Part shown: piece by piece, positions 25,587 through 64,000 of the stretch | Layout: every line of letters begins with the position of its first letter | Position numbering within the stretch: position 1 is the stretch's first letter | From: Rebecca billardiae RCC1528 | Lineage: Eukaryota; Protista; Haptophyta | Assembly (NCBI GenBank): GCA_965240325.2 | Contig: OZ251232.1 | Coordinates: forward strand, 1,736,001 to 1,800,000 | Direction of reading: 5' to 3' | Length of the DNA stretch: 64,000 nt | The notes under the pieces: model-generated | Databases searched by the model: none | What the model saw: the letters and a program-made list of their open reading frames with translations, nothing else | Told to the model about the DNA's origin: nothing | Program-made: the position numbers and the translations under genes

Positions 25587-27276
<1,690 letters not shown>

Positions 27277-27773: not shown

Positions 27774-28735
<962 letters not shown>

Positions 28736-28945
28736 CCTTCACCGTTCACGGACAGACACGGTTCTGAAAATAATATGGCCGCCTGCTGAGCAAGCCGAGA
28801 GTCAGCTTCGGACTCGGACGAGCCGGCGCTACGCCGCCCGACTGCGCGGCCCCGGTGCGGCAGAGTGCGGCCGACTCGCCCGCTGCTGATGCTGCGAATA
28901 CGACGACTGATTACTGCTGCGATGACGCTGATGGCGACGCTATCT

Positions 28946-31633: not shown

Positions 31634-31752
31634 CGGCCAGCGCCCTGGATCTTCTCGGCGAGCAGGCAGCGTCGACGACGACGATATGCTCCGAACAGTC
31701 CTCGCTGCCGCCGCCGCCGGCGCAGCCGCCCACGTCCAAGAACCGCACGCGC

Positions 31753-34414
31753 TACACGAAGGCGATCATCGTGCGCGTGCCCAGCGACGGCCAGATCGTC
31801 CCGGACATGTTCATCATCTCGCACCACGTGCGCTTCGACGAGGACACGCTCTACATCGACCACCCCGACGCCGCTCACATCGCGCGCGACCCGCTCGCCG
31901 CCGTGCCGCAGCTGCCGCCGACGCCGCCGCCGCTCGATCTCCATGCTGACGATGTGGGTAATGGGGGAAGTTTCCATGGCGCCGTCCGGCGCCGCGATGG
32001 CGCTGACGCATCGGACACGCTGAGCGGTGGGGGACGCACCGCACGCCTACGTCGGAGACGCTGACGACGACGCCGCCGGCGCCGAGGACTCCCTCGATGT
32101 CGGCAACGCGCTCAACGACGACGACCCGCCCTCATCTCGCACGCGCGCGCGCGCGCACGTCAACTCGGTCGCGTCGCCGACTTACTCCAAGCTGCCGCGC
32201 ATCTACGCGCTCCTGCTCGCCATCGGACTCTCGGACACGCCGACGGCGGTGCAAGCACTCAACGGCCCGCATGCGACGCAGTTCGCCGCCGCTCTCGACG
32301 CCGAGTACGCCTCCATCCTGGCCAACAACACGTGGGTGGAGGTGCCGCGCAAGCCGGGGATGCGCACGCTGAAGGCGGCGCCCGTGTTCAACATCAAGCG
32401 CGACAAGAAGGGCAACATCAAGCGGTTCAAGACCCGCGTCGTGGGCAAGGGCTTCACGCAGATCGAGGGCATCGACTACGACGAGACCTTCTCCTCGGTC
32501 GTCCGCTACGAGACCCTCAAGATGATCATCGCCATCGCCGCGGCCAAGCAGCGCCGCCTCTTCCACGGCGACTTCACGACGGCGTACCTCAACGCGCCGA
32601 TCGACTACGAGATCTACCTCGAGCTGCCGCTCGGGTACAAGCCGAAAATGAAGGGCGACGTCGTGCTGCGCCTCCTCAAGAGCCTCTACGGTCTCAAGCA
32701 GTCCGGCCGCAACTGGCGTCTCATGATCGACGACTGGATGAAGGAGTACGGGTTCGCGCAGAGCCAGGCCGACCCGTGCCTCTATGTCCTCAACACGCAG
32801 TCGGGCATCATCGCCGTGTGCATCTACGTGGACGACATGCTCATCCTCGACGACAGCGACGACCCGACCGCCTGCGACAACTTCATCTCGAAGATCACAT
32901 CCTCGTACAAGATGACCATCACGGCCGACATCGACGGCTACCTGTCGGCCACGCTCACGCGCTCCAAGGACGGCATCATGGTGACCGTCACCAAGAATAT
33001 CCTCGAGCTCCTCGAGAAGACGGGCTTCATGAACTGCAACACGTCCGACACGCCGATGACCGAGGGCCTCAAGCTCGGCCCGTGCTCCGAGTCAGACGCG
33101 CTCGACGCGGAGACGACGACGTTCTTCCGCTCCGTGGTCGGCTCGCTCATCCACATCACGCAGTTTCGCCCGGACATCGCCTACGCCGTCGGGACGCTCA
33201 CCCACTTCATGTCCAAGCCGGGCAAGAAGCACCTCGAGGCTGCCTAGCGCGTCATCCGCTACCTCGCCGGCACGCCGAACCACGGCCTCTTCTTCCGCTC
33301 GGGCTCAGACGTCACGCTCATCGCGTACGTGGACGCCGACTACGCCAACGACCTCCACGACGAGCGCAAGTCTGTCACCGGCTACGTGATGCACCTCTGC
33401 GGCTCGACGGTGAGCGGCCGCCGCGAGAAGCAGCGCACGACGGCTCTGAGCTCGACCGAAGCTGAGTACATGGCCGTCACCTCCGCCGGCAAGGAGATCA
33501 TCTTCATGCGCAAGCTGCTCACCGACCTCGGCTACCCGCAGCTCGCGCCGACCAAGCTCTTTGAGGACAACAAGGCGGTGGTGGACCTTACGGACAACGA
33601 GAAGTACCACAACCGCACCAAGCACATCGGCGTCCAGTACCACTGGAACCGTCAGCACGCCCGCGCCGGCACCTTCAAGCTCTTCTTGATCCCCGGCACC
33701 GAGAACCCGGCCGACATCATGACCAAGCCGCTCGGCCCGGCCGCCTTCCTCAAACTTCGTGCTCAGCTCCTGGGCATGTAAGGCCTCGCCGCACACACGA
33801 AGTCCCAGTGCTACATCGGTCGCCGCTCGTCGGACGCACATTGACCTCACGCTGTCTCTTCTGAACGGAGACGCTGCCGGCACCGACTCGCCCGACTTCT
33901 ACATCGTCTTCTCGGACACCCGCTCCGACGCATGCATCCCATACGGCAACATCGCATCATATCTACACTCACACGATGGTCACACGTCTACACCCAGTCC
34001 CTTCGGGTCGACCAGGTTTCGTACGACCACCGCTGCGATTGGGTGGGGGTGTCAAGATCCGACGTTACCCGGACTCGCTCTCCAGTCCATACGCACCCGG
34101 ATCACCAACCGTCACAGGACACTATGCATATGCCGACTTTCATTATCAGCCTCGGCATGGCCTACGCGCTCCATCTTGGTTATTACTTTCCCGACTTACG
34201 TACCCGTTGATGGATATCAGAGCCTTTCACACGGTCCTATAGACTTGTCGGATTCCTTCCTAGCCAGAGTCCCCGGTTCAGTTCCATACCGGCCGTTATT
34301 TCATATTATTACTCCATCTGTCGACCTCCGTCCCTCGCCGACGAGCCTCGTCAGCCGTCACGCCTCCGGGGCCTCACGGGGACACGGCCCCGTCGCTCTC
34401 TTCACCCTTTGACA
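31753..34414 (+). mobile_element. 5'-truncated Ty1/Copia retrotransposon (end of IN, RT, RNase H, PPT, 3' LTR), copy 1
   Basis: ISHHVRFDE (IN tail), FKTRVVGKGFTQIEGIDYDETFS, LKSLYGLKQSGRNW, IYVDD, DADYA...RKSVTGY...LSSTEAEY...ADIMTK. PPT GGGTGGGGG at 34041-34049; LTR 34050-34414 TGTCAA...TTGACA. Confidence 0.95.
32027..33781 (+). pseudogene. Copia pol RT-RNase H with upstream frameshift and in-frame TAG at 33245-33247
   Basis: HLEAA*RVIRYLAGT where AAKRV is expected; the frame stays open to TAA at 33781. Confidence 0.9.
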
Positions 34415-36557
34415 CCCCGCCATGCCAGGCTACTCGTACCGAAGGCGTCGTCGTACGCCGAATGGACTCTGGCCAGCTGGATGGTCGCGGCGCGCGGCGT
34501 CGTGGAGTGGACGACCACGATGCTGATCATGGAACGACCAGGTTAGCTATGTCGTTGCCTGTTGTCGGATTGGATATAATTCGACCAGCAAACTCAGTTA
34601 TTTTTGACGAGTGTATATTCAGTGGCGTTATCTTCATGATACTCACACGTGTGCCGTAGTGACCACTTATACTCAATACACTTACACACTGTCGCGTGTG
34701 TACGATGAAATACACACCGTCGATGTCATGTGTATGGGATACACAGCAGTGTGTATGAGAATACACACACTGGCGGTGTGTATGATGGATACACACCAGT
34801 GAGGGAGAATACACACTGATGGGGTGCCTATGAAATGCACACGCGTGGTGATTGGCATGACACACTTGCTGATGCACACCTAGCACTACTACACACCAGT
34901 CGATGAGCTACCGCTCCGTGGTGCTCCGGCCCGGGCGCGGACGCGAGTCCGCGCCCCGAAGCGCCTGCGTCGGCCGCATGACGGACGATGCGCATGCATC
35001 TGGCTTTGCCCGAAGTGGAGGCGGCGCACGCCACCAAGGCGCCAAGGCGCCAACACGTGCCGTGCGAAAGCTGGACCGAGGTTACTCCGAGTCCGAGCTC
35101 CTGTCGCAGGACGGATCGGGTCAATGGTGAGGGCCGTTGCACGCACTTCCGCGATATTGTGAGCTCGGTTCGCGCACATCCTCCTCGGCATGCACAGCGG
35201 CTTTGGCATGCGCTGCGCGCACATGAACGCGACCTCCGCTGGCGGGGTGTCTGCACCGAGCACAAGGACGGCAAGGTCAGCGTGCTCATCACATGCCAAG
35301 ACGACGAGTCGTCGTATCAAGCGGCGCGTCGCAGTCGTCTGCAGTCGTCCCGACAGCGCCAACGTGTCCTCGGCTTGCTCACCACCGTTGTCCCTGAGGG
35401 CCTTGCGCATCACACGTGGCGCATCCCTCAGCGACGCTCTGGTGTCGTCGAGCTTCGCGAAGGGCTCTTGTCCGCACAAGCGGCCTGGAGTCGTGCCTCT
35501 GCGGCTGCAATCGCCTCTTCAGGCCGCAACACGCGGTTGTCCAGCTGAAATTGCGACGGGGCGTTGCTCAGGAGGTCCGCCCAGTCGCTGGCGGCGCTGC
35601 CTGTCGCCATCGCCGCGCGCCCGGGCTCACGCCCACCGGCCGCGCCCGCTGGCTGGGTGTGTAATGGTGCTGTGCCGATTCGAGTGTGTAGCCGAAGAAC
35701 TTCGTACACACTGATGTTCATTTTCGTTCACACCTGGGTACACACCAAATGTGCCCATACACACCATTTACACTCCAGTTTTCACGCAGTGTATGCAAAT
35801 AACTGAATACACTCGCGTCAAAAAATAATAACTGAATTTGGTCGTGGGGTGGCTCCGTTGGGATTTGAGCAACGAACGATGCCAACGGGCGCTGGCAGCA
35901 GGGCGTGGCGGTTGAGCTGCTGCCCGAGGTCGAGAGGGCGCCCGCGAGTCATCAGTCACTGAGCAAGGTCGATTAAGTCTGACGATGGCTCGCTGACACT
36001 GAAGTGCTCCATAGATAGACCATATCCGCCAGAGGCCGAGGGTGGGCCGGGCCCGGGGCGGGCAATAAATAAACGATGAAGCGTGATGCGGGTTGACGCG
36101 ACAGCGGCGAGAGCAAGAGACCATTGCATGAGGGGCGACGCGGGCGAAGACAGATGATGTCGTCGCGCCGCCGAACGATCAGGCGGGGAGCCGGGCCACA
36201 CAGACAGCCAGCGACCTTACCGAGCAGAGCGGGGCTGTGGCGACTGCGGTGCACCTCCTGCAGCGGAGAGTGCACCCGGCAGTGCCCGATGCAGGCGATC
36301 CCCCTGCCCAGCTCGGCGCCTTCGTCGTGAGCAGCCCCATGGCGCCCCCGAGAGCGAAGCCTGATCGATCCGATAAGTCGTAGCGGTAATCAACCGAGTC
36401 CTGCAGGTGCGTCGCTGTGGGCCAGATTGGCCAGCGCACCAGGACTCCTGCGCGCGGCGGTGCGCGCGGGACAACGCAGCAGGAATGCCATGCAAGCGCC
36501 GGATTCTTGGCGTCGTCGCTCATAGACACTCAGGTATGGGTTCCCTATAACGCCACA
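34415..36557 (-). mobile_element. Family-Y LTR-like repeat, cut by the Copia LTR and interrupted by a 1.3-kb insertion
   Basis: 34415-34552 and 35857-36557 are reverse-complement homologues of contiguous parts of 27774-28562. Confidence 0.8.
34558..35855. mobile_element. Non-autonomous TIR-like element nested in the family-Y repeat
   Basis: Imperfect ~45-bp inverted repeats near the ends (CGACCAgcAAACTCAGTTATTTTTGACGAGTGTATATTCAGT versus the reverse complement of ~35803-35845); TACAC-rich subterminal motifs; CGTTG at 34553-34557 and 35856-35860 as candidate TSD. Confidence 0.6.
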
Positions 36558-36898
36558 TATTATACGACTTAATGACGTGACAGTAATGTCAGTATGCTGA
36601 ACGGGCAGGCGTCAGAGTCAGCAAGCTACGGTAGCCAGCAGATCGAGCAGCAGAGACAAACACCATTACACCAGGATCAGCGCTCCTCGCCGTCGTCGTC
36701 CCCCCCCCCCCCCCCTTGTACTTGTAGTCGCCCATCATCACTCCATCATCGCCGAGCGGAAGCTCGACGCACCGTCTGGCGTCGACACACGCGCGCCACC
36801 GTGGTGGTCGCGGTGGCCACTCGCGTCGTCAGCCGTCGTCTCGAAGTAGTCGACAGTAGCCTGCTTATTAATCATTATTATACTGTACGTATATACGA

Positions 36899-36903
36899 CT
36901 CTC

Positions 36904-36937
<34 letters not shown>

Positions 36938-36948
36938 ACTCTCTCTTA

Positions 36949-36978
<30 letters not shown>
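36899..36978. repeat. (CT)n microsatellite (duplicated at ~63718-63797)
   Basis: Imperfect CT run. Confidence 0.95.
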
Positions 36979-36979
<1 letters not shown>

Positions 36980-37289
36980 GTCAGACTCTGACTCTCAATA
37001 TCTGCCGTACTGCGTCGGCCGCTCCGAGCGGCGATGACTGATGCGTCTGACTGAGTTAGCTCGGTCCTACCGCCTGTAGTATTACTGTCCGCCAGCCGCG
37101 GCATCATTATCAATTACATGCGGTCGTCTACTACAATACACTAGCGGCTAGTAGTAGCTACCCTCCGTCAGCAATCATCAGCCTAGTTCTTCCGGCCACA
37201 CGGCGCCTCCATCCACGATGCCCGATGACGCGACGACGTGCCGGCGGCGCCAAGCCTCTCTGGTGCTGACTGCTGATGGCATGATGCGC

Positions 37290-37863
37290 GACATGCGGCG
37301 GCGTCAAGCTGCCGTGGTGGATTATGCAGTTGGCAAGGCCAATGGCGGTCATAACATGCGGTTGGCAAGCCACCCGCGCGCCCTGCACCGCTGCACGTGC
37401 TCGAGCTCGGCGTCGTCATGTTATGCAGCTGCCGCACCGTCACTGTCTTGCCGACAGCCGAAGGGCGAGCACGACGGCGGCGCGCGACCGCATCCGAGGC
37501 GAGCATCACCGGATGTGCAGCAAGACGGTTCGATGCCAGCTGGACGATCATGGAGCCGTGCATGTCCCTGCAGAGCTGGCCGTGCCTCCGACGGCGGGCC
37601 GGCCGCTGCTGCCAGCGACTACGACACACCCAACATGGCTGGTAAGCTAGTGGTATGAGTGTTGGCTTGACCATCTGACGCCCGTGGCCGCGTCGCGCGA
37701 GTGAACGCTCGTCGACTTTGACGGCTTCCTTGCGCCCGCCGGCTCGAGCGCCCCGACAACGCCGACGTCGCTCGCACACACCACCCAAGGCCAAGTGCGC
37801 GAGGAGCAAGTCACGCCAGTCACGCCCGCCTTTCGCTTGTTGCTTTTCGTCGCGCCCAATGAC
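37290..37863 (+). repeat. Family-Z repeat fragment; diverged inverted copy at ~38335-39020
   Basis: For example 37680-37770 matches the reverse complement of 38410-38510, and 37325-37420 that of 38915-39002. Confidence 0.75.
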
Positions 37864-38063
37864 CAATACGGTTTGGCGCTTTTCGGCCAACTCAACAGAA
37901 GGATGTTCTGTTGAGTTGGCCGATCGGCGAGGGGGGGGGGGGTGGGCTCGACAACAGGGCCCAGGCTCTGTTGAGTTGAGCTTGGAGGCCAGCTGGACTC
38001 GACAGAAGAATGCTCTGTTGAGTCGGTCGGACGTTGGCGGCCTCTCGACAGAGCCCCGGTCTG

Positions 38064-39245
38064 CACTCTACTGAAGCGCGACTCGCTCGCTCGGGCCGAA
38101 AATCTGGCGAAATCTGCATCTTTCAGACTCTTTCAGACTTTTTCGGGACTAAGCACCAGATCGCACCAGATCGATAACAATCTGCACTCTACTAAAGCGC
38201 GACTCGCTCGCTCGGCAAAAAATCTGGCGAAATCTGCATCTTTCAGACTCTTTCAGACTTTTTCGGGACTAAGCACCAGATCGACATCTGCCAGATCGAC
38301 ATCTGCCGCCGCGCTCCGGACTGTCTGTGTCCGGACTGTGGTTGGGCGCGGCGAGCGAAAAGCGATGGCGGGCGTGCCTTGCGCCCCGCGCGCTCAACCT
38401 TTGGGTGACGGCGTGCTCGCGACGTCGGCGTTGTCGGGGCGGTCGAGCCGGCGGGCACAGGGAGGCCGTCAAAGTCGACGAGCGTTCGCTCGCGCGACGC
38501 GGCCGCGGGCGTTCGGATGGTCCGGCCAGCACTCGTCCCAGCGCTGCGGCGTGTCGTCGTCCCGGTCGGCGTCGGCAGCGGCCGGCCCGCCGCAGAGCAC
38601 GGCCAGCTCTGCAGGGACATGCACTGCTCCATGAGCGTCCAGCTGGCATCGAACCGTCTCGCTGCACATCGGCTGATGTTCGCCTCGGATGCGGGCCGCG
38701 CGCCGCCGTCGTGCTCGCCCTTCGGCTGTCGGCAAGACAGGGACGATGCCAGCTGCATGAGATGACGACGCCGCAGCTCGAGCACGTGCTGGCATCGAAC
38801 CGTCTCGCTGCACATCCGCTGACGTTCGCCTCGGATGCGGCCGCGCGCCGCCGCTCGAGCTCGCCCTTCGGCTGCCGGCAAGACAGGGACGATGGCAGCT
38901 CAGCATGAGATGACGATGACGCCGCAGCTCGAGCACGTGCAGGGCGCGCGGGTGGCTTGCCAACCGCGTGCTATGACCGGCGTTGGCCTTGCCAGCTGCA
39001 TTATCTATGACGACAACGCGCCGACCTCGAGCGCACGGTCGCGCGGGCCGAACAACACTTTGCAGCACTCTTCCAAGCCGCCTCACAGCCGGTCAACGCA
39101 GCCGGCGCGGCCCGGCACGACGTCGACTGCCGCCAGGCGAGCGGGGCTCCGAGGTGTCCTTGTCAAGTGCGGTGGTGACGCCCGCATGGTCCTTGCCCGA
39201 TGGGCCGGCCGCGCCCGCCCGGGACGAGCGGGGCAGAACAGCCTA
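38064..39245. mobile_element. 1.18-kb insertion in the left arm only (120-bp tandem duplication plus inverted family-Z sequence)
   Basis: Absent from the right arm; GTCTG at both junctions (38059-38063, 39246-39250); duplicated unit 38060-38180 / 38181-38283. Confidence 0.7.
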
Positions 39246-40959
39246 GTCTGTTGAGTTGATCGTTGGTGGACACCGGTGATGGGGGTGCCTTGGGGCGCAC
39301 CGACGGCGTAAAGGCGCTGCGGGCGCTGCGGTGCGCGCGACGGCGGCGCGCCCGGTGGCGCTGCTGTTGGAAGCTACTGCGCCCCTCTCCACCTCGCGCG
39401 CTTCGCTCGTCGTCGCCGTCTCCGCACCTGCTACCGGCATGCACGCGTGCGCAGCGCCTCGGACGCCCGTTGACGGCGCGCGCCCCGGCAACCGCCCATC
39501 ACCGGCGGCGGCGAGTGCTGTTGCGGTTGGATGGAATCGGATGGTCTGCTGATAGTTGGACCAACCAACCAACGCCCTCGGTGGGCTTGGGCTTTGGTGT
39601 ACGGAGCGTTCGGTGGAACTTGAGCCTCGGCACATTTCCCAGCGAAGTGGCCCACCTCGACGTGGCTGGCACGCTCGTCACGCGCTCCCGAGCGCTCGTT
39701 TCGCGGTGCCGCAGGCCTTGGGCAGACCAGTCAGACATGGCGCGACCGCATTACCGGGCCATGTGCGCACCACATCCGCGCTACGTGGCCTGCGCTCTGG
39801 ACGACTGGGAGTCAATGCCCGGACCCACTGCATTCCACTGCCCCGCATGCACCCCGAGTCACCGTCAGAAGGCGTCGACGAGCGCAGAGCGGGTGCGCGG
39901 GAGTTCAACCAACTCGTGTACCTTCTTGCAAGCACCAGTGGCGAGGTCGCACGCCCAATCGTGACCAGCCGTGGAACTTGAGCCGGTCGGCAGCAAAACC
40001 ACCGTGTGGCGGCCGAGATGAAGTAGCAGCGTGCGACTGCAAGGAGGAGGCGCGGTGCGTGTCCGCGGCTGGCGAGAGGCGTCCGGACCGTGATGTTCTC
40101 GGCCGCGTCCGCGCGCTTCCCGCCACCGCAGGCCCCGTGTACGCCCGTCGTCGCCCTCGCCGCGTGGGGCGTGGGCGCCCACCGAGCTCAAGTCCCATGG
40201 CAAGGAAGTACTGTACTGATCTACAGTTTACTATGATACAGTACGTAGTAAGATTTAACGTGCACACTTGGTTCAACAGTACGTAGTGATCTTGACAATG
40301 TGGCCGTGCACGCGGCAACAGGGCTCAGGCGGCCCAGTTGTCGAGTGCAGGCGTGTGTGGCTTGCGATGGCAGCCAGCCGTCAGCCGGGGCGCCACGCCC
40401 ACGGTTCGCTGGTGGGCTGGCCCGATGGCGTCGCAGAGCTCACGCGTACGGGGGAGGAGGGCATCGACGAGGAGACGACCAAGGGCGAGAAGCAGCCGGG
40501 GGCACGCAGCACGGGGCTCGGAGCATGCCGCCAGCACGCGTGCCTCCACACCGTCGCACGTCACCCTTGCTCGTAGCTGTGCGCTGTGCTGCACTCATCT
40601 CACCATCGCCCATGCTACGGGCGCGGCCGGGTGGTGGACATCTACCTGTCGGCGCAGCACTGGCATCGGTGGTCGCCAGACACTTCTCGACTTGCTCTGC
40701 GCGTGACAGCAAGGAGACGGCAGCGCCACAGCTGTGTGAGCAGATGTCAGGTGCTGCTCTGCTCAGTGAGGCTGATAGACTGAGCACGCATGGCGGGCGC
40801 TGGCATTCCCCCGCATCCATGAGCCCAACAGGTGCATAGCCGTGCCCAGGAGCGCAGGACCAACCGCCCGGTGCTGCTTCAAACACCTGCGCCCCACGCT
40901 GCAGGCAGGATGAGGGGCGCTCGACTCTACGCCGCACGCGGCGGCAGCAGCTGGGCCGC

Positions 40960-43600
40960 TGGGATGGTCCTGCGCGGATGACGGCGGTCGCCGCGGCTGA
41001 CAGCTTGGTGTCACTGGTTCGACGGGCCTGGACGACGGACGCGCCGAGCACGGTGACGCTGTTCGATGCGCCCACGGCACTGCCCAGCGCGCTGGAGGCG
41101 TCGCCATCTGGTGCTGCTGTGCCTGCGCCCAGCTTGGGCAGCAGCAGCTGCGCTCAACTCCCCGCCGCGGGCAGCGGCAGGGATGGTGCCACGGCGGGCG
41201 GCGGCGGTCGACGTAGCTGTCAGCTCGGCGGTGCACGCCCGAGGGGCGTGGGCGCTGGACGCACCGAGCGCGGTGACGCTGCTCGCCTCGACCATCGCGC
41301 TGGAGCCGCTGCCATCCGGTGCTGCTGCGCCCGCGCCCAGCCGGGGCATCAGCAGCTGCGCTCAACTCCGCGCCGTGTGCGGCAGCAGCAGCAGGGATGG
41401 TGCCACGGCGGGCGGCGGCGGTCCACGGAGCTGTCAGCTCGGCGGTGCACGCCCGAGGGGCGTGGGCGGTGGGCGCATCGAGCGCCGTGACGCTGCTCGC
41501 CTCGCCCATCGCGCTGGAGCCGCTGCCATCCGGTGCTGCTGCGCCCGCGCGGGCAGCAGCAGCAGCGCTCGACTCCGCGCCGCGTGCGGCGGCAGCAGCA
41601 GGGATGGTGCCACGGCGGGCGGCGGCGGTCGACGGAGCTGTCAGCTCGGCGGTGCACGCCCGAGGGGCGTGGGCGGTGGGCGTACCGAGCGCCGTGGCGC
41701 TGCTCGCCTCGCCCATGGCGCTGGAGCCGCTGCCATCCGACGCTGCTGCGCCCGCGCCCAGCCGTGGCAGCAGCAGCAGCGCTCGACTCCGCGCCGCGTG
41801 CGGCGGCAGCAGCAGGGATGGTGCCACGGCGGGCGGCGGCGGTCGACGTAGCTGGAAGCTCGGCGGTGCACGCCCAAGGGGCGTGGGCGCTGGACGCACC
41901 GAGCGCCGTGACGCTGCTCGCCTCGCCCATCGCGCTGGAGCCGCTGCCATCCGGTGCTGCTGCGCCCGCGCCCAGCCGTGGCAGCAGCAGCAGCGCTCGA
42001 CTCCGCGCCGCGTGCGGCGGCAGCAGCAGGGATGGTGCCACGGCGGGCGGCGGCGGTCGACGCAGCTGTCAGCTCGGCGGTTCACGCCCGAGGGGCGTAG
42101 GCGCTGGACGCACCGAGCGCCGTGACGCTGCTCGCCTCGCCCATCGCGCTGGAGCCGCTGCCATCCGGTGCTGCTGCGCCCGCGCCCAGCTTGGGCAGCA
42201 GCAGCAGCGCTCGACTCCGCGCCGCGTGCGGCGGCAGCAGCAGGGATGGTGCCACGGCGGGCGGCGGCGGTCGTCGTAGCTGGAAGCTCGGCGGTGCACG
42301 CCCGAGGGGCGTGGGCGCTGGACGCACCGAGCGCCGTGACGCTGCTCGCCTCGCCCATCGCGCTGGAGCCGCTACCATCCGGTGCTGCTGCGCCCGCGCC
42401 CAGCCGTGGCAGCAGCAGCAGCGCTCGACTCCGCGCCGCGTGCGGCGGCAGCAGCAGGGATGGTGCCACGGCGGGCGGCGGCGGTCGACGCAGCTGTCAG
42501 CTCGGCGGTGCACGCCCGAGGGGCGTGGGCGCTGGACGCACCGAGCGCCGTGACGCTGCTCGCCTCGCCCATCGCGCTGGAGCCGCTGCCATCCGGTGCT
42601 GCTGCGCCCGCGCCCAGCTTGGGCAGCAGCAGCAGCGCTCGACTCCGCGCCGCGTGCGGCGGCAGCAGCAGGGATGGTGCCACGGCGGGCGGCGGCGGTC
42701 GTCGTAGCTGGAAGCTCGGCGGTGCACGCCCGAGGGGCGTGGGCGCTGGACGCACCGAGCGCCGTGACGCTGCTCGCCTCGCCCATCGCGCTGGAGCCGC
42801 TACCATCCGGTGCTGCTGCGCCCGCGCCCAGCCGTGGCAGCAGCAGCAGCGCTCGACTCCACGCCGCGTGCGGCGGCAGCAGCAGGGATGGTGCCACGGC
42901 GGGCGGCGGCGGTCGACGCAGCTGTCAGCTCGGCGGTGCACGCCCGAGGGGCGTGGGCGCTGGACGCACCGAGCGCCGTGACGCTGCTCGCCTCGCCCAT
43001 CGCGCTGGAGCCGCTGCCATCCGGTGCTGCTGCGCCCGCGCCCAGCTTGGGCAGCAGCAGCAGCGCTCGACTCCGCGCCGCGTGCGGCAGCAGCAGCAGG
43101 GATGGTGCCACGGCGGGCGGCGGCGATCGACGGAGCTGGAAGCTCGGCGGTGCACGCCCGAGGGGCGTGGGCGGTGGGCGCACCGAGCGCGGTGCCGCTG
43201 CTCGCCTCGCCCATGGCGCTCGAGCCGCTGCCATCCGACGCTGCTGCGCCCGCGCCCAGCTTGGGCAGCAGCGGCTGCGCTCGACTCCGCGCCGCGTGCG
43301 GCGGCAGCAGCAGGGATCGTGCTACGGTGGGCGACGGTGGTCTCTAGAGCTGAAAGCTCGGCGGTGTGCGCCTGAGGGCCCTGGGCGGCGGGCGCATTGA
43401 GCGCGCTGACGCCTCTCGCCTCGCCTGGCGCGCTGGAGACGCTCCCATCCGATGCTGCTGCGCCTGCGCCCTGGCGCGCTGAGTGCGGCTGCAGCATCAG
43501 GGATGGCGCCACGGCGGGCGGGCGCCGGTGGATGCAGCTATCAGCTCGGTGCTGCACGCGCGAGGGGCCTGGGCGGAAGGCGCGCGCAATGCAGTGACGC
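40960..43600 (-). repeat. 214-bp tandem satellite, ~12 units, with a 428-bp dimeric higher-order core
   Basis: Period 214 (CCCGAGGGGC at 42301 and 42515); alternating variants give ORF pairs 428 bp apart (42069/42497, 42168/42596, 42382/42810); degenerate edges. Confidence 0.95.
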
Positions 43601-43867
43601 TGATACACGCAAGCCCGGCGGCGCAGACCCGAGTCGTAGCCCGGCAGGTAGGCGGCACAGTAGTAGCGTAGTTTTCGTCACGGCATCGATCAGCATCGAT
43701 CACGCGCATCATCACTGGCTACGACATCAGCGCATCCCGGCCTACACGGGACGGAGGCGGAGTGGCGTATATATATATATATCGCGTCGATCAGACTGAC
43801 GCAGTCCGCGCGCAACTGAGCATCAGCAGGCAGTCCGACCGGGCCGTCTCCCGATCCGCGGCCACCG

Positions 43868-44793
43868 TTCGTCCGAGGCCTGTTTTATTTCTACGAGAGC
43901 CCAAAGGCGACATTCGCCAAAACGCGGTACAATGGCGGCTTGCCCGCTGGTGCGGGCCCCGGAGCTAGTTCGGAGAAGTGATGGCACGTCATTCGCGCAT
44001 TCTCGTGTTGAGGCGCTGCGCTGTGGCGAAGGATGTTGTCAGACATGCTGATTCGCCTTGCCGTGGTGCTTCGCCTTGACACAGGGGTCACTCGCGGTGC
44101 ACGGCAGTGTGCACGATGCAGCGGCGGCGAGCGGCGGCAAACCGCTGCAGCTGGAGGCCCTCTGCAAGCTGCAAGCACTCTGCCTTGGCTGCTGCGTCGC
44201 ACCCGTGTCAGTTAGCGACCAGTTCACAGCCAGATGGACTGCAATCGCCACCAGCTCTAAACGCTCCGCCGCCACTACCTTGTCGAGCTTGAGATGCTTC
44301 CGTTCGGCGTGCGCTTGCTTGCAGCTTGCCGCCTGCATTTGAACGTGATCGCGGAAGGTTAGTAGGCCGGATGCTCAGGCCTCCTCGGCGTATAATATTA
44401 CAAGGTGCGTGCCACGCGCACCCATGACGCGCGGAAAGGCGTGCACAAGCGTCCTGGCGCATCTTTCAGGCTGCAGTCTTGGCCAAGATGATGAGAACAA
44501 GCCTGCCAGTGCCGCGCAGGCGCGAGCGCGCGGAGAGTTCTGGGATCCGACCCATGGTGTTGGGTGTACCTCGTGTGCGACAACGACGAGGCGGACGAGC
44601 GCCGCAACTGGATTCGTGCACTCACCGGTCACCGAGGAGTGCACGAATCGCATTCCTTGCGCACGTGGGGGCCGCCATCGGCCGTGAGAGGTACACCCAA
44701 CGGGGCGTGACACCGATTCCCACTGGCGGGCACGGGTTTGTCGCCGTGACATAGTAAATGGAATCTGGTAGAAATAAAACAGGCCCCGACGAA
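43868..44793 (+). ncRNA. Candidate ~925-nt highly structured non-coding RNA
   Basis: Nested perfect helices: 43877-43894/44768-44785 (18 bp), 44164-44177/44316-44329 (14), 44559-44572/44688-44701 (14), 44611-44623/44637-44649 (13). Additional G-U-containing helices. No credible ORF. Expression is not shown. Confidence 0.55.
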
Positions 44794-45201
44794 GTCACAT
44801 CACCACACCGTCACAGCGCAGATATATATATATCCGGAGCATACATATACGCAGTCGTGATGCCTGATGGCGCCACGGTTGTGCTGGCGGCTCACAGTCA
44901 CACTCGATCAGTCGTCGCGTCCGGGTATAATAATAAGTGCGATGAAGCAGTACTTAGTATGAGTATAGTCTGCTGCGCTGATGGCTTAGCAGTCGTCGAT
45001 CTGCTTATTACGACTACTGCTGTTCTTAGTCTTACGGGCGGACTATACGGCTCAATAAACTCAATGATGTAGCAGCGCGCAGTAGTCGACATCACTCATC
45101 AGAGTAATAAGCTCAGTGACTAAGCTGACGACGATGAGGCGACTACGTGACGCGCGCAGTACTAGATCCGCGCCGACCGTCAGCTTATAGGCGTCATATT
45201 A

Positions 45202-47510
45202 TGGCCCGCGGTGCAGGGCGGAGCGCGCAGCGTGGAGCCCGCACCAGCGGGCCGGAACCACGTTTCAAAAAGATCTTTGATCAAGAAAAAGGGACGCGGG
45301 GGCCGATTTTTAGGGCTGGCGGAGACCGAGTTTCGAATTTTGAGACCCTCTCTACAGATGCATCACGGAGAAAAAAACCGCGTCCACGACATTCCCCTAA
45401 TCAATCGTGGACGGCCGGGCGTGAGAGTTCACTTCTGTGTGAAGTAGGACGGTTACAAGTCCAATACAAGCGTCAGCTTCTTTGAGGCTATTTTTGCACG
45501 TCCTTACGGGATCAGCGAAGTAACCAACCGATATATATTGGCTTCGTCGGGGTCGTATTCACTACTGGAGAACATTTGCACCGCGCTTCGTATTCATATG
45601 TATGGTTCACGCAGGCATAAAATCGCTTCATCGGGGTCGTATCCACTATACTGGAGAACATCATTTGCACCGCTTCGTTTTCATCGAGCAGAATATCATC
45701 GATATTCATCAGGCGCACGTGTGCGTATTCATCATCAGCCTTCGGGAATTGGGAGTAGCTATTGGCCTTTGCCCTCTGGCGAGCCAGTTGTGCGCACTTT
45801 AAGAGCAGGCCTGAGCAGGCTCGAGGCCACTTTTTTGCCGCTCACGTGGACATGATGCCGAGCACGTCTCACGAGGTGCGCGCGGCGAGTGGCGTCTGGA
45901 GCGCGCGGCTGTGGTGGGCCCCGACGGCCGTCGACATCGCGTTCGTGCCCCGCTCACTCTGAACTCCGCGCGCCCCCGCCGCCCTATCGATCGATCATCG
46001 ATGCCTGCGCGCGGAATCGTGCACCGCGCGTGCCGCCCGCGACCGGCCGCGGCAGGCCCGAGCCGCCCTTTCGGGCTCTCGCAAGCACGGGGGCAGCGGC
46101 GCCTGATGGCGGACTGATCGACATCTGAGTCTCCGACTTCACCACGCGCCCCCCTCGTCATGCCTTCCCGGGGTCTCCCACGGAAGACGGACTAACCGAG
46201 CAGGCGACGGTACTGTCTGTACGCTGCCGTGACACACGCCACACACGGCGCCTGGGCAGCGGGCAGTGGTGGCGGGGTCCCGCGGACGTCAGTCTTCCCC
46301 TCGCGCCCTGCTCACCTCGAGTGCGCCGCCACGCGCCTCCGCACGCGTGTCCCATCGATGCGCAGAGCGGCATGCTTGCATGAAAGTTGAAATGGCTGGG
46401 TCATCAGCCCGCGCCGGCAAGTCTGTCTAGCGCTGGACGGACGGACATAGGAGGACGAGCAGCGCGGGCGACGGTGGTGCGCGACGCTCCCAGAGCTGGC
46501 CGTGCCTCTGCGACGCGTGCCGAGCCTGACCGAGGTGTGTCACCCGGTCCACGCGCGGCGCGCGCGAAGGCACCGGTGCTGTGGCTGCTCGGCTCGAATC
46601 CGCGGCCTCGCCTGGCACCGCGGCACCGTGCTCCCTGGCTGTCAGCTCCGCGTGGCCTGGCGTGCACGTAGAGTTGCGCTCATGCGTCGATCACGCCTCG
46701 CGCCCGCCTGTCGGCCGTCGCGCAGGCGCTGGTCGAACCCTACTCGGACCAGTGCAAATCATCTATCCCGTGGCCGCTGCCGGCGCGCGGTGACGGGACA
46801 GCGCGGTCAGCAGCAGGCGCAGCGGCCCGAACGAATCCGCGGCCCCGCACCGTGCTCCCTGGCTGTCTGCTCCGCGTGGCCTGGCGTGCACGTGGAGTCG
46901 CGCTCATGCGTCGATCACGCCTCGTCGCATCCGCCTGTACACAATATCGGCGCCGCGGCGGCGGCTCGCGGTCAGCAGCAGGCGCAGCGGCCCGAACGAA
47001 TCCGCGGCCCCGCACCGTGCTCCCTGGCTGTCTGCTCCGCGTGGCCTGGCGTGCACGTGGAGTCGCGCTCATGCGTCGATCACGCCTCGTCGCATCCGCC
47101 TGTACACAATATCGGCGCCGCGGCGGCGGCTGTGACTGGGCCCGCCCGGCCCCGGGCGCCCCGGCGGCCCGGCGCGGCCGAGGCGGCGGCGCGCCGCTGG
47201 AGTCTACTGCTACAGTTTACTAAGAATAAGAGACGCACACAGCTCAGGCAGGCGAGATTGACGCCCGCCAGCTGTCACCGCCCATGAAGCCGTCGCCGAT
47301 GGTAGCGCCGCCGGAAAAAAATCGTTACATCAGTAGTTGTACGGGCATGCCAACCGTGCCATTACTGGTCTCACTCTCAGCCTCAGGTCTGTCCGAATCG
47401 GACAATCGTGAAATTGAATAGAGTTAGACGACTGCGCGACGGAGGGTGCACCGCCACCGCGGGCCCCGAACTACGTTCGTTCTACGGAAAAGGACCGCGG
47501 AACGCGGTCA
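45202..47510 (+). mobile_element. Non-autonomous element, copy B (same ends as 25587-27179, different interior)
   Basis: Shared 5' ~145 bp and 3' ~55 bp ending in hairpin GACCGCG-GAA-CGCGGTC; TCATAT at 45194-45199 and 47511-47516 is a possible TSD. Confidence 0.75.
46802..47130 (+). repeat. 2 x 165-bp tandem duplication (diverged partial copy at ~46595-46700)
   Basis: CGCGGTCAGCAGCAGG at 46802 and 46967. Confidence 0.9.
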
Positions 47511-47639
47511 TCATATCCGGGCACCGTGCTACACTCCGGCGCGACACGGTCAGCTGGTCAGCAGCTAGTAGAGTCGTAGTTTATAACGACCGGTCGTCGG
47601 CGTGCCAAGCAGTACTCAGCACCGCCCGACCACCGCCGC

Positions 47640-49990
47640 CGGCCTGGCTGTGGCACCTCCCTGCTGCTACCACCGCATGCGGCGCGAAGCTTCCTGAGCG
47701 CAGCTACTGCCAGCTCGGCATCGAATGGCAGAGGCTCGAGCGCGCTACGGAACGAGGCGAGCGGCGACACCACGCTCGGTGCGTCCAGCGCCCACGCCTC
47801 TCGGGTGGGCACTGCCAAGCTTTCAGCTGCTGCGGCCGCCCGCCGTGGCACCATCCCTGCTGCTGCCGCCGCACGCGGCGCGGAGTCGAGCGCTGCCGCT
47901 GCTGCCCAAGCTGGGCGCCGGCGCAGCAGCGTCGGATGGCAGCGGCTCCAGTGCCATGGGCAAGGCGAGCAGCGGCACCGCGTTCGGTGCGCCCACCGCC
48001 CACGCCCCTCGGGCGTGCACCGCCGAGCTGACAGCTGCGTCGACAGCCGCCGCCCGCCATGGCACCATCCCTGCTGCTGCTGCCGCACGCGGCGCGGAGT
48101 CGAGCGCTGCTACTGCTGCCACGGCTGGGCGCGGGCGCAGCAGCACCGGATGGCAGCGGCTCCAGCGCCATGGGCGAGGCGAGCAGCGTCACCGCGTTCG
48201 GTGCCTCCAGCGCCCACACCCCTCGGGCGTGCACCGCCGAGCTGACAGCTGCGTCGACAGCCGCCGCCCGCCATGGCACCATCCCTGCTGCTGCCGCCGC
48301 ACGCGGCGCGGAGTCGAGCGCTGCCGCTGCTGCCCAAGCTGGGCGCCGGCGCAGCAGCGTCGGATGGCAGCGGCTCCAGTGCCATGGGCGAGGCGAGCAG
48401 CGTCACCGCGTTCGGTGCCTCCAGCGCCCACGCCCCTCGGGCGTGCACCGCCGAGCTCACAGCTGCGTCGACAGCCGCCGCCCGCCATGGCACCATCCCT
48501 GCTGCTGCTGCCGCACGCGGCGCGGAGTCGAGCGCTGCTGCTGCTGCCACGGCTGGGCGCGGGCGCAGCAGCACCGGATGGCAGCGGCTCCAGCGCGATG
48601 GGCGAGGCGAGCAGCGTCACGGCGTTCGGTGCCTCCAGCGCCTACGCCCCTCGGGCGTGCACCGCCGAGCTTCCAGCTGCGTCGACCGCCGCCGCCCGCC
48701 GTGGCACCATCCCTGCTGCTGCCGCCGCACGCGGCGCGGAGTCGAGCGCTGCTGCTGCTGCCACGGCTGGGCGCGGGCGCAGTAGCACCGGATGGCAGCG
48801 GCTCCAGCGCCATGGGCGAGGAGAGCAGCGTCACCGCGTTCGGTGCCTCCAGCGCCCACGCCCCTCGGGCGTGCACCGCCGAGCTGACAGCTCCGTCGAC
48901 CGCCGCCGCCCGCCATGGCACCATCCCTGCTGCTGCTGCCGCACGCGGCGCGGAGTTGAGCGCTGCCGCTGCTGCCACGGCTGGGCGCGGGCGCAGCAGC
49001 GTCGGATGGCAGCGGCTCCAGCGCCATGGGCGAGGCGAGCAGCGTCACGGCGCTCGGTGCGCCCAGCGCCCACGCCCCTCGGGCGTGCACCGCCGAGCTT
49101 CCAGCTGCGTCGACCGCCGCCGCCCGCCGTGGCACCATCCCTGCTGCTGCCGCCGCACGCGGCGCGGAGTTGAGCGCTGCCGCTGCTGCCCTGGCCGGGC
49201 GCGGGCGCAGCAGCGTCGGATGGCAGCGGCTCCAGCGCGATGGGCGAGGCGAGCAGCGTCACGGCGCTCGGTGCGCCCAGCGCCCACGCCCCTCGGGCGT
49301 GCACCGCCGAGCTTCCAGCTCCGTCGACCGCCGCCGCCCGCCGTGGCACCATCCCTGCTGCTGCTGCCGCACGCGGCGCGGAGTCGAGCGCTGCTGCTGC
49401 TGCCACGGCTGGGCGCGGGCGCAGCAGCACCGGATGGCAGCGGCTCCAGCGCGATGGGCGAGGCGAGCAGCGTCACGGCGCTCGGTGCGCCCAGCGCCCA
49501 CGCCTCTCGGGCGTGCACCGCCGAGCTTCCAGCTGCGTTGACCGCCGCCGCCCGCCGTGGCACCATCCCTGCTTGTGCCGCCAATGCGGCGCGGAGTCGA
49601 GCGCTGCTGCAGCTGGGCCCCAGCTGGGCGCAGGCACAGCAGCACCAGATGGGAGCGGCTCCAGCGCGCTGGGCAGTGCCGTGGTCGCGTGGAGTGACGT
49701 CAACGCGCTCGACGCGTACGTCGCCGTGGCCCCTCGAGCGAGCGACACCGAGCTGTCATCTGCGGCGAACGCCGTCATCCGCAGCGGGACCATCCCAGCA
49801 GCTGCTGCCGCATGCGGAGCAGATTCGCCGAGCGTGGCTGCTGCTGGTGTTGGCCCGGATGGGCGCGGGCGCAGCATCATCAGTTGCCAGCGACCCCATC
49901 GCGGTGGACGCGATGGGCTAGGTCGCTACTTTCGGCGCGCCATTGCCCAGGCCGTTCAAGCGAGCACCACCGAGCTGATAGCTGGAGCGA
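47640..49990 (+). repeat. 214-bp tandem satellite, ~11 units, inverted relative to 40960-43600
   Basis: Same unit (GGCACCATCCCTGCTGCTGCCGCCGCACGCGGCGCGGAGTCGAGCG...), period 214 (48061, 48275, 48489). Confidence 0.95.
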
Positions 49991-52557
49991 CTGCCGCCGC
50001 CCGTCGTGGTACTGTACTGCTGCTTGCTGCTGCAGCATCAACAGCGCCGCTACTACTATTACCAGCAGCGCTGGGCGCGTGTATCCGAAGCAGCACCGTA
50101 CTGTATTGATGGCCCTGCCGTCTGAGTAGGGGAACATGCCAGTAGCTCGCATGCACCAGGATTGCAGTCCATGCCAGTACTGCCTCGCCGAGTAGAGTAG
50201 TAGGACCTCATCTGCTCACACAGCTGTGGCGCTGCCGTCTCCTTGCTGTCACGCGCAGAGCAAGTCGAGAAGTGTCTGGCGACCACCGATGCCAGTGCTG
50301 CGCCGACAGGTAGATGTCCACCACCCGGCCGCGCCCGTAGCATGGGCGATGGTGAGATGAGTGCAGCACAGCGCACAGCTACGAGCAAGGGTGACGTGCG
50401 ACGGTGTGGAGGCACGCGTGCTGGCGGCATGCTCCGAGCCCCGTGCTGCGTGCCCCCGGCTGCTTCTCGCCCTTGGTCGTCTCCTCGTCGATGCCCTCCT
50501 CCCCCGTACGCGTGAGCTCTGCGACGCCATCGGGCCAGCCCACCAGCGAACCGTGGGCGTGGCGCCCCGGCTGACGGCTGGCTGCCATCGCAAGCCACAC
50601 ACGCCTGCACTCGACAACTGGGCCGCCTGAGCCCTGTTGCCGCGTGCACGGCCACATTGTCAAGATCACTACGTACTGTTGAACCAAGTGTGCACGTTAA
50701 ATCTTACTACGTACTGTATCATAGTAAACTGTAGATCAGTACAGTACTTCCTTGCCATGGAACTTGAGCTCGGTGGGCGCCCACGCCCCACGCGGCGAGG
50801 GCGACGACGGGCGTACACGGGGCCTGCGGCGGCGGGAAGCGCGCGGACGCGGCCGAGAACATCACGGTCCGGACGCCTCTCGCCAGCCGCGGACACGCAC
50901 CGCGCCTCCTCCTTGCAGTTGCACGCTGCTACTTCATCTCGGCCGCCACACGGTGGTTTTGCTGCCGACCGGCTCAAGTTCCACGGCTGGTCACGATTGG
51001 GCGTGCGACCTCGCCACTGGTGCTTGCAAGAAGGTACACGAGTTGGTTGAACTCCCGCGCACCCGCTCTGCGCTCGTCGACGCCTTCTGACGGTGACTCG
51101 GGGTGCATGCGGGGCAGTGGAATGCAGTGGGTCCGGGCATTGACTCCCAGTCGTCCAGAGCGCAGGCCACGTAGCGCGGATGTGGTGCGCACATGGCCCG
51201 GTAATGCGGTCGCGCCATGTCTGACTGGTCTGCCCAAGGCCTGCGGCACCGCGAAACGAGCGCTCGGGAGCGCGTGACGAGCGTGCCAGCCACGTCGAGG
51301 TGGGCCACTTCGCTGGGAAATGTGCCGAGGCTCAAGTTCCACCGAACGCTCCGTACACCAAAGCCCAAGCCCACCGAGGGCGTTGGTTGGTTGGTCCAAC
51401 TATCAGCAGACCATCCGATTCCATCCAAGCGCAACAGCACTCGCCGCCGCCGGTGATGGGCGGTTGCCGGGGCGCGCGCCGTCAACGGGCGTCCGAGGCG
51501 CTGCGCACGCGTGCATGCCGGTAGCAGGTGCGGAGACGGCGACGACGAGCGAAGCGCGCGAGGTGGAGAGGGGCGCAGTAGCTTCCAACAGCAGCGCCAC
51601 CGGGCGCGCCGCCGTCGCGCGCACCGCAGCGCCCGCAGCGCCTTTACGCCGTCGGTGCGCCCCAAGGCACCCCCATCAGCCATCACCGGTGTCCACCAAC
51701 GATCACTCAACAGACCAGGGCTCTGTCGAGAGGCCGCCAAGGTCCGACCGACTCAACAGAGCATTCTTCTGTCGAGTCCAGCTGGCCTCCAAGCTCAACT
51801 CAACAGAGCCTGGGCCCTGTTGTCGAGCCCACCCCCCCCCCTCGCCGATCGGCCAACTCAACAGAACATCCTTCTGTTGAGTTGGCCGAAAAGCGCCAAA
51901 CCGGGTTGCAATGACAGCGATCGATCGATGAAAGGGATATCCGATCCGATACTGCACGTTAACGGTAAATGGATATCAGTGAACTGCAACTACTCATTCT
52001 ATATTATTTGACGACACAGGTATCATAAGGTCTCTATACCCCCATGGTGGTATTCATACTGCGCTTCTTCGTGAGAGTTGCGTTGAAGATTTGAGGGTGT
52101 CAGATTTCGATCTCCGAAAAAATCTGATGACGATGTTCTTCTCGTCGACCTGAGAATAGTCTGCCTTCGCACCTGTACTCTTGATGAGGTCTGCTTTTCC
52201 ATATGGCGGGCCGTTTATACTATCATAGTATCATACATTCTCAAGACAATTGTCAATCAACGAGATCATCAAACATGTACTCTCTTTTATACTCTCGTCT
52301 CAATATGTACTCAGTCGTCGTTCCTGCGCGAATCATGATATTGACGTAGTACTTTTGAAGGCGCCACGGCGCGGGTTCGAAGCGCCATCTAGCCAACTGA
52401 AGGAATATAAAGGGGGGGCTACCGGCGCGTACTCAAGGTGGGTGCGCAGCCGCCCCGCCGCCGGGCCGGGACTTAAATTAATTTACATGGCCCGGCGTCG
52501 GGGCTGCGAGCGCTTTGCAGTTCGCGATCGCCTGGCAAGCAGGCACGAGGAGGCGTG

Positions 52558-55626: not shown

Positions 55627-55776
55627 TAATCATAATATATATATATAGACGTACTAATAGAGAGTCAATAATTAAAGACGACGACCCTGCTGCTTCTTAT
55701 TATTATATAATGCGTCTTATTCGGTCTTATTTATTAAATTGTGACACCGGATGCTGATGGCAACGCTAGATATTCG

Positions 55777-58455: not shown

Positions 58456-58574
58456 CGGCCAGCGCCCTGGATCTTCTCGGCGAGCAGGCAGCGTCGACGA
58501 CGACGATATGCTCCGAACAGTCCTCGCTGCCGCCGCCGCCGGCGCAGCCGCCCACGTCCAAGAACCGCACGCGC

Positions 58575-63379: not shown

Positions 63380-63722
63380 TATTATACGACTTAATGACGT
63401 GACAGTAATGTCAGTATGCTGAACGGGCAGGCGTCAGAGTCAGCAAGCTACGGTAGCCAGCAGATCGAGCAGCAGAGACAAACACCATTACACCAGGATC
63501 AGCGCTCCTCGCCGTCCTCGTCCCCCCCCCCCCCTTGTACTTGTAGTCGCCCATCATCACTCCATCATCGCCGAGCGGAAGCTCGACGCACCGTCTGGCG
63601 TCGACACACGCGCGCCACCGTGGTGGTCGCGGTGGCCACTCGCGTCGTCAGCCGTCGTCTCGAAGTAGTCGACAGTAGCCTGCTTATTAATCATTATTAT
63701 ACTGTACGTATATACGACTCTC

Positions 63723-63756
<34 letters not shown>

Positions 63757-63767
63757 ACTCTCTCTTA

Positions 63768-63798
<31 letters not shown>

Positions 63799-64000
63799 GT
63801 CAGACTCTGACTCTCAATATCTGCCGTACTGCGTCGGCCGCTCCGAGCGGCGATGACTGATGCGTCTGACTGAGTTAGCTCGGTCCTACCGCCTGTAGTA
63901 TTACTGTCCGCCAGCCGCGGCATCATTATCAATTACATGCGGTCGTCTACTACAATACACTAGCGGCTAGTAGTAGCTACCCTCCGTCAGCAATCATCAG

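Follow-up and report, generated by a model that had tools for sequence, protein, structure and literature searches.

A probable family of young, non-autonomous foldback transposons that carries satellite DNA in the haptophyte Rebecca billardiae

Introduction

What is the large inverted structure that occupies 14 kb of a contig of the haptophyte Rebecca billardiae RCC1528, how did it come to be there, and which enzyme could have moved it? The structure lies at positions 37864-51908 of the window, by which we mean the whole 64,000-nucleotide stretch of contig OZ251232.1 that was analysed (C15:1736001-1800000 in our numbering of a 72-Mb, 41-contig genome); it starts with CAATAC, ends with GGGTTG and is bordered on both sides by a perfect 7-bp duplication, CAATGAC. 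A first-pass annotation, made from the letters of the window, had described it as a very large foldback element without a transposase, related to the Galileo elements of the P superfamily and carrying satellite DNA and a structured RNA. Our analysis indicates that 37864-51908 is very probably one copy of a young, non-autonomous, foldback-type family of cut-and-paste DNA transposons, whose junctions, arms, origin and candidate enzyme are described below.

Insertion junctions and copies in the genome

Both junctions were read directly from the sequence. On the left, CAATGAC is followed by CAATACGGTTTGG (37857-37876), and on the right CCAAACCGGGTTG is followed by CAATGAC (51896-51915), the two target-site duplications at 37857-37863 and 51909-51915 being identical to each other. 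The real insertion with CA...TG ends that had been proposed at first pass therefore reads as it was claimed, and six independent 7-bp duplications in the genome bear it out. The left flank (37320-37863) is a copy of a repeat family that we call Z, into or beside which the element was inserted, and its part at 37320-37817 matches 38371-39005 in reverse complement with 85% identity. An alignment with family Z had been offered as further support for the insertion site; it supports just 2 bases beyond the duplication and so adds little.

The genome was searched with the terminal 200 bp, a check that the first-pass annotation had itself recommended for finding other copies and the lengths of their duplications. 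The results showed 15 complete sites and one split site, which form eight inward-facing pairs, 9.8-15.4 kb apart, on six contigs (one copy each on C1, C10, C11 and C35, and two copies each on C15 and C23), while no short copy and no solo end of the family was found by this search. All eight copies were retrieved and aligned to the window copy. The start CAATAC and the end GGGTTG are present in all copies with the exception of C1, in which 6 bases are gone from the right end, and the left and right ends differ from each other at positions 4-5 (TA versus CC) in every copy. When the flanks were compared by script, 7 bp were identical at six independent insertions (CAATGAC, GGACCCC, GGCCAGT, CGCTCGT, GGTCTGA and GACTGGG); these duplications are all perfect and all different, and they are exactly 7 bp long, as the 8th base differs on each side. 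The six duplications point to a 7-bp staggered cut at insertion, and units of about 10 kb have moved whole. As is expected of foldback elements with terminal inverted repeats (TIRs), the genome contains a set of copies that share their ends, sit at unrelated sites and have duplications, and their number is far above what chance would give. A lone 38-bp fragment of the terminal domain (positions 5-42) was also seen at C19:1375930-1375969 (L048:9931-9970) among ordinary host genes; it was set aside as the possible end of a relative, no partner end being nearby, and it is probably the remnant of a lost copy.

The two copies on contig C15 belong to one tandem duplication. Window positions 28924-37181 are repeated at 55750-64000 with 99.5% identity, and the repeat runs on past the window end to a sister copy, C15b (C15:1800683-1811314). 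Its flanks and its CAATGAC are those of the window copy, and the similarity between the duplicated units extends beyond it for 1 kb or more. The duplication is about 26.8 kb in size, with units at 28924-55749 and from 55750 onward (C15:1791750 onward), the foldback included. An empty paralogous site had been suggested about 680 bp past the window end; this site holds the sister copy instead, because the tandem duplication copied a site that was already occupied.

We also considered whether the structure had never been mobile and arose by palindromic duplication on the spot, or from a region that forms hairpins and was wrongly assembled. Large palindromes are indeed prone to misassembly, and the 26.8-kb tandem units differ by the presence or absence of insertions, as two alleles would, but the eight copies on six contigs have the same two end bases, and their flanks are unrelated and different, each with its own perfect 7-bp duplication, so that we give this explanation practically no credence.

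Architecture of the arms and the satellite arrays

The inverted structure was obtained from self-comparison of the window and the tandem arrays from Tandem Repeats Finder, and together they agree with the earlier description of the arms as a terminal domain, a 1.5-kb tract and inverted 214-bp arrays. The left terminal domain (37864-38063, forward strand) begins with CAATACGGTTTGGCGC, and the right terminal domain (51709-51908, reverse strand), read inward, begins with CAACCCGGTTTGGCGC. They contain a terminal inverted repeat of 195 bp (37869-38063 versus 51903-51711) that is 98% identical between the two sides, and across all eight copies the terminal domain is 98-100% identical. Four palindromic modules lie in the terminal 205 bp. 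In three of them the 8-mer CTC(A/G)ACAG and CTGTTGAG form an inverted pair with a 9-nt spacing, and in the fourth, which was read by eye, the left half is a variant, CTCGACAACAG. The 8-mer in its two orientations occurs 7 times per terminal 205 bp and twice elsewhere in 10.3 kb, and 7 of the 8 matches per element half sit in the terminal domain. These modules are likely transposase binding sites, by analogy with the subterminal sites of P and Galileo (PMC3688188).

Inside the terminal domains, the left unique arm (39246-40916, forward) and the right unique arm (50035-51719, reverse) share a 1.5-kb tract, 39242-40746 versus 51719-50209, which is 99-100% identical between the arms, and the identity falls abruptly inside 40746/50209. 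The left satellite array (40917-43476, forward) has 11 units in the window copy and the right one (47718-50034, reverse, inverted) has 9 full units; Tandem Repeats Finder placed the 214-bp arrays at 41082-43471 and 47718-49674 in opposite orientation, and degenerate 214-bp units extend them outward to about 40917 and 50034. The family centre, which in its first part is non-palindromic and without coding signal, is split in the window copy over 43477-43876, 44786-45201, which contains an (AT)n tract, and 47511-47717, the third part being placed by the alignment of copies. The arms of 4-5 kb with 214-bp arrays around a centre of about 1 kb are the structure by which foldback elements are recognised. 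The standard form of the family, in the order of 200-bp terminal domain, 1.5-kb arm, inverted 214-bp arrays and centre, is 9.8-10.3 kb long, and the extra 3.7 kb of the window copy are three nested insertions. The size of 14 kb given at first pass is thus true of the window copy and does not hold for the family, and the supposed spacer of about 4 kb resolves into about 1 kb of family centre and 3.2 kb of nested elements.

A Pfam comparison of 26 unspliced open reading frames (ORFs) from arms, centre and nested inserts, of which 24 lie in the window copy and two in nested inserts of C35 and C11, gave no family above the cut-off. The sole Pfam domain in any copy is the reverse transcriptase of a retroelement nested in C11, and scans of the element with Rfam and for tRNAs were blank. 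As the 24 ORFs of the window copy have no Pfam family and the centre is just about 1 kb, we conclude, in agreement with the first-pass annotation, that the element is non-autonomous, with no transposase gene inside it. The larger inserts were rejected as a place for such a gene, since the C11 insert is an RVT_1 retroelement and the 648-aa ORF in C35 matches no family.

Recent spread and exchange between arms

Among all copies, no more than 0-7 sites of the 1.5-kb arms are different (0.5% at most), which means that the family has spread recently. In copy C11 both arms carry the same three private changes, with zero differences between the arms, and in the C15 pair variants are also shared between arms, which shows exchange between the two arms of one element.

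The satellite, which had been said at first pass to be mobilised by the element, is present in inverted arrays in every copy, and the number of units varies between copies and between arms (6-11 on the left, 9-16 on the right). The central units are most alike and the edge units most diverged, and the window copy has a fresh expansion of two units in its left array; its two arrays are not mirror images. The 214-bp unit also occurs in other arrays of the genome.

Origin of the inner body

The inner 600 bp of the arm (window 40299-40900) and the satellite match at least 20 other foldback-like loci with 92-93% identity, and these loci are inverted pairs, 5-7 kb apart, with one common starting boundary. 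The eight copies alone have the outer 1.26 kb of each arm, with the exception of a 557-bp piece that is related to three other loci. As judged from these alignments, the body is shared with a second and commoner foldback family of 5-7 kb, which we call S and whose ends are different; one of its loci is C25:18,000-23,600. The family may thus have arisen as a chimera, in which the inner arm and the satellite would come from the shared body while the outer arm would be private, and this could have happened by a nested insertion followed by homogenisation of the arms, or by extension of the arms. In Galileo, foreign pieces in both arms and chimeric copies have been described (PMC3573991, PMC4168063). 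The outer terminal domain was also compared with the sequence at 40296 (CAATGTGG...), the boundary of the shared body, but the similarity was rejected because it is no better than with shuffled sequence, and no duplication stands at this boundary.

Candidate transposase

In the mechanism that we propose, a transposase supplied in trans would recognise the 200-bp terminal domain. The P type is our leading candidate for this enzyme, at about an even chance, because the P, 1360 and Galileo enzymes are the known makers of 7-8-bp duplications. Transposases of this superfamily combine THAP, RNase-H-like and GTP-binding-insertion parts, and they excise their elements through long staggered cuts, after which pieces of the ends stay behind as footprints; in the present family the paralogous site is occupied. 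The published range for the P superfamily is 7-8 bp (PMC4168063), and the present family has 7 bp at six of six sites.

A profile search of the genome with PF12017 gave nothing, and one with PF21787 gave a single locus on contig C21. This locus has a 1322-aa P/THAP9-like ORF (C21:1532845-1536810; L050:2845-6810, reverse strand) with PF21787 at 2e-7, above the cut-off, and a weak match to PF21788, and its only match in PDB is the fly P transposase 6P5A (E = 0.2). A protein word search with this ORF found a single relative, which is 28% identical. At the protein level the ORF has no second copy in the genome, but it lies inside a multi-copy unit, parts of which recur at five loci as short derivatives (C7:1,883,000-1,886,400 among them) with 94-100% identity, falling to 85% further left. 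An element of the long terminal repeat (LTR) type with 563-bp direct repeats, a 2229-aa ORF and at least 11 copies at 96-99% sits in the 3' part of the unit at a (TA)n tract; the 2229-aa ORF belongs to this element and was rejected as part of the P-like unit. The multi-copy similarity ends at L050:6952, and 17 bases outside it stands, in end-like orientation, CACCTGTTTGGCGCG, which contains the 9-mer GTTTGGCGC, the core of the foldback ends, and this 9-mer has no other exact match in the 20 kb examined. The presence of this 9-mer beside the P-like gene is a post-hoc link of modest weight, and neither inverted ends nor a duplication were found around the locus in the same 20 kb. Neither the end sequence nor any relative of the P-like protein was found in scans of metagenomes.

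Related ends also occur outside the foldback family. The 16-base end pattern has 204 matches genome-wide in comparison to 80 for a reversed-pattern control, and repeat families with ends near CAAYMCGGTTTGGCGC include CAAGACGGTGTGGCGC (at least 11 sites), GAGCCCGGTTTGGCGC (at least 8) and CACCCCCGTTTGGCGC (two paired copies), while two loci outside the family, C15:1,905,832 and C16:648,452, have ends with one mismatch, both CAATAAGGTTTGGCGC. The pair-forming relative with ends CACCCCCGTTTGGCGC, of which there are just two copies of about 3.1 kb, was set aside.

The same observations bear on the question whether the family is moved by another superfamily, by a Mutator-like, a hAT-like or an undescribed enzyme, which we hold to be quite possible, somewhat short of even chances. 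Most foldback elements have been placed in the Mutator group; the searches for ends in the genome yielded no coding partner with the foldback ends, the C21 gene is without terminal-domain motifs, and the related 16-base ends, in excess over the control, occur in several other repeat families, one of which ends in GAG instead of CAA. This has to be set against duplications of exactly 7 bp at all six sites, in comparison to 8 bp for the hAT superfamily, which counts against a hAT-like enzyme. The 7-bp length also falls outside what Mutator-type foldbacks make, which is 8-10 bp (PMC4079207).

With a P-type enzyme kept as the leading candidate, several observations weigh against the reading of the locus as given so far and have to be stated together. 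No autonomous copy with the foldback ends was found, the matches to the terminal 200 bp in the genome being eight non-coding copies and one 38-bp fragment. Apart from the 9-mer, the P-like element on C21 does not resemble the terminal domain, and on the inner side its multi-copy similarity already stops 17 bases short of that 9-mer. The Galileo consensus GTANTAC, or any palindrome, was not seen at the six target sites, although such target motifs vary from element to element within the superfamily, that of P being a 14-bp palindrome, and six sites are a small sample. The right end of copy C1 (C1:~208592) is without its last 6 bases and has no clean 7-bp duplication; AATTCT stands in their place and resembles the nearby left flank, and the sequence suggests a repaired break. 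No duplication was found at the boundary between the private outer and the shared inner arm, because the arms mirror each other through this boundary. Finally, the two tandem units could be two haplotypes or alleles that were assembled in series instead of a tandem duplication.

A wider proposal can be put forward, namely that a clade of P-type enzymes would recognise ends of the form CA, 3-5 bases and GTTTGGCGC and would move protein-less foldbacks of 10 kb, that the foldback bodies, with their satellite arms, would be exchangeable modules which repeatedly gain new ends in this genome, and that one satellite would thereby be spread by several transposon families, possibly with different enzymes. 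We regard this proposal as rather unlikely.

Comparison with known foldback elements

Similar to the present family, the classical Foldback (FB) element of Drosophila melanogaster has inverted arms that consist largely of tandem repeats around a small centre or none, and its copies can be non-coding. FB makes duplications of 9 bp, and the repeats of its arms extend nearly to the ends, while the present family has a unique segment of 1.7 kb outside the satellite.

Galileo, a member of the P superfamily from Drosophila, has in common with the present family the 7-bp duplication and the CA...TG ends, and also the long inverted arms with tandem repeats of about 210 bp that expand and contract independently in each arm, the uptake of foreign repeat pieces into both arms, and the existence of many non-coding 'two-TIR' copies and of chimeric copies (PMC3573991, PMC4168063, PMC3688188). 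It differs in that coding copies with a THAP-domain transposase are known, while no coding copy was found here, and in that its arms reach about 1.2 kb in comparison to 4-5 kb with 6-16 satellite units in the present family. Galileo also prefers GTANTAC in AT-rich DNA, whereas the six sites of the present family are without consensus, and its host is an insect rather than a GC-rich protist.

The layout of Tetris in Drosophila virilis is almost the same as that of the present family, with an outer terminal domain, tandem repeats, an inner domain and a non-coding middle (PMC4079207). Its tandem repeat is about 220 bp in comparison to 214 bp here, and in both cases complete copies are very few, an autonomous partner is not known, and the repeat unit occurs in other arrays of the genome (PMC4079207). 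Two differences separate them: Tetris makes duplications of 8-10 bp and was therefore assigned to Mutator, while those of the present family are strictly 7 bp, and Tetris shares its ends with a miniature inverted-repeat element (DAIBAM), while no short relative with the ends of the present family was found.

The foldback element of the window is of a known kind, and conceptually it offers nothing beyond Galileo and Tetris unless its enzyme is found. The exact ends and the six independent insertion scars document that gene-less, hairpin-shaped elements of 10 kb are still mobile in a GC-rich protist. These foldbacks bring the 214-bp satellite to new places in the chromosomes and remodel it rapidly, a concrete example of how transposons can found and disperse satellite DNA in an organism that is neither animal nor plant.

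Nested insertions and history of the locus

Nested insertion 1 (38060-39245, about 1.19 kb) consists of a 120-bp tandem (x2), an inverted copy of family Z and a 146-bp tandem (x2). Its family-Z part is 85% identical, in inverted orientation, to the left flank of the element. The insertion is common only to the window copy and its sister C15b and is absent from the six other copies, and its boundaries are ambiguous by 4 bases (TCTG), its own duplication being degenerate.

Nested insertion 2 (43877-44785), a miniature TIR transposon of 909 bp, has perfect inverted ends of 18 bp, GGCCTGTTTTATTTCTAC and GTAGAAATAAAACAGGCC, and is bordered by a 4-bp duplication, CCGA, at 43873-43876 and 44786-44789. 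It is found in the window copy alone. The segment around it (43868-44793) is the one that the first-pass annotation had taken for a structured-RNA cargo, and a functional unit that comprises all 14 kb, including a 4-kb spacer, and has a structured-RNA gene as its cargo would agree with the self-complementarity that the segment shows in places. However, the segment has inverted ends and a duplication of its own, it is missing precisely from the seven other copies, the sister from the tandem duplication included, and no Rfam family matches it; the remaining excess of the spacer is moreover a second nested element, of which an independent copy exists at 25587-27179. We consider such a 14-kb functional unit very improbable, and the cargo to be the miniature transposon described.

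Nested insertion 3, which we call X (45202-47510, forward strand), is a 2309-bp TG...CA element that lies between A and T without a duplication, and in the sister copy C15b this A^T site is exactly intact. The 3' end of X carries a hairpin with a GAA loop, GACCGCG-GAA-CGCGGTC, and a 165-bp tandem lies inside the element. The second X copy of the window, at 25587-27179, lies beside (AT)48 and shares just 147 bp on the left and 59 bp on the right with the copy at 45202-47510, and copy C11 (L037 near 5375) has a 13-base remnant of X, GGCCGCGGTCAT, at the same position. From these features X looks like an element of the rolling-circle type that favours TA-rich sites.

The history of the locus was drawn from the features that are shared by the copies or private to one of them. 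The duplicated units differ by two later insertions and by the number of satellite units; insertion 1 predates the tandem duplication, and insertions 2 and 3 postdate it. In the order that we propose, the foldback would first have inserted beside the family-Z repeat, a Z-family element would then have entered its left arm, the 26.8-kb tandem duplication would have copied the whole locus, and finally the 909-bp miniature transposon and the 2.3-kb A^T-inserting element would have entered the centre of the window copy alone. The sister copy thus makes a dated before-and-after pair, with two later insertions and with a clean empty site for an A^T-inserting element that leaves no duplication.

Other copies of the family have been entered by different elements. 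The centre of copy C35 (L033:4991-8540) holds a 3.5-kb TIR element whose inverted ends include ACACAGCAACGA...TTTAAAGCGGCCGTTA and whose 648-aa ORF has no Pfam match, and the right terminal domain of copy C11 (L044:1-6311) is split by a 6.4-kb retroelement with RVT_1 in a 575-aa ORF. Perfect (AT)48 and (AT)85 tracts were also observed in the window, at 27179-27274 and 28562-28731, in a region that is otherwise 65-75% G+C, and one of them adjoins the A^T-inserting element.

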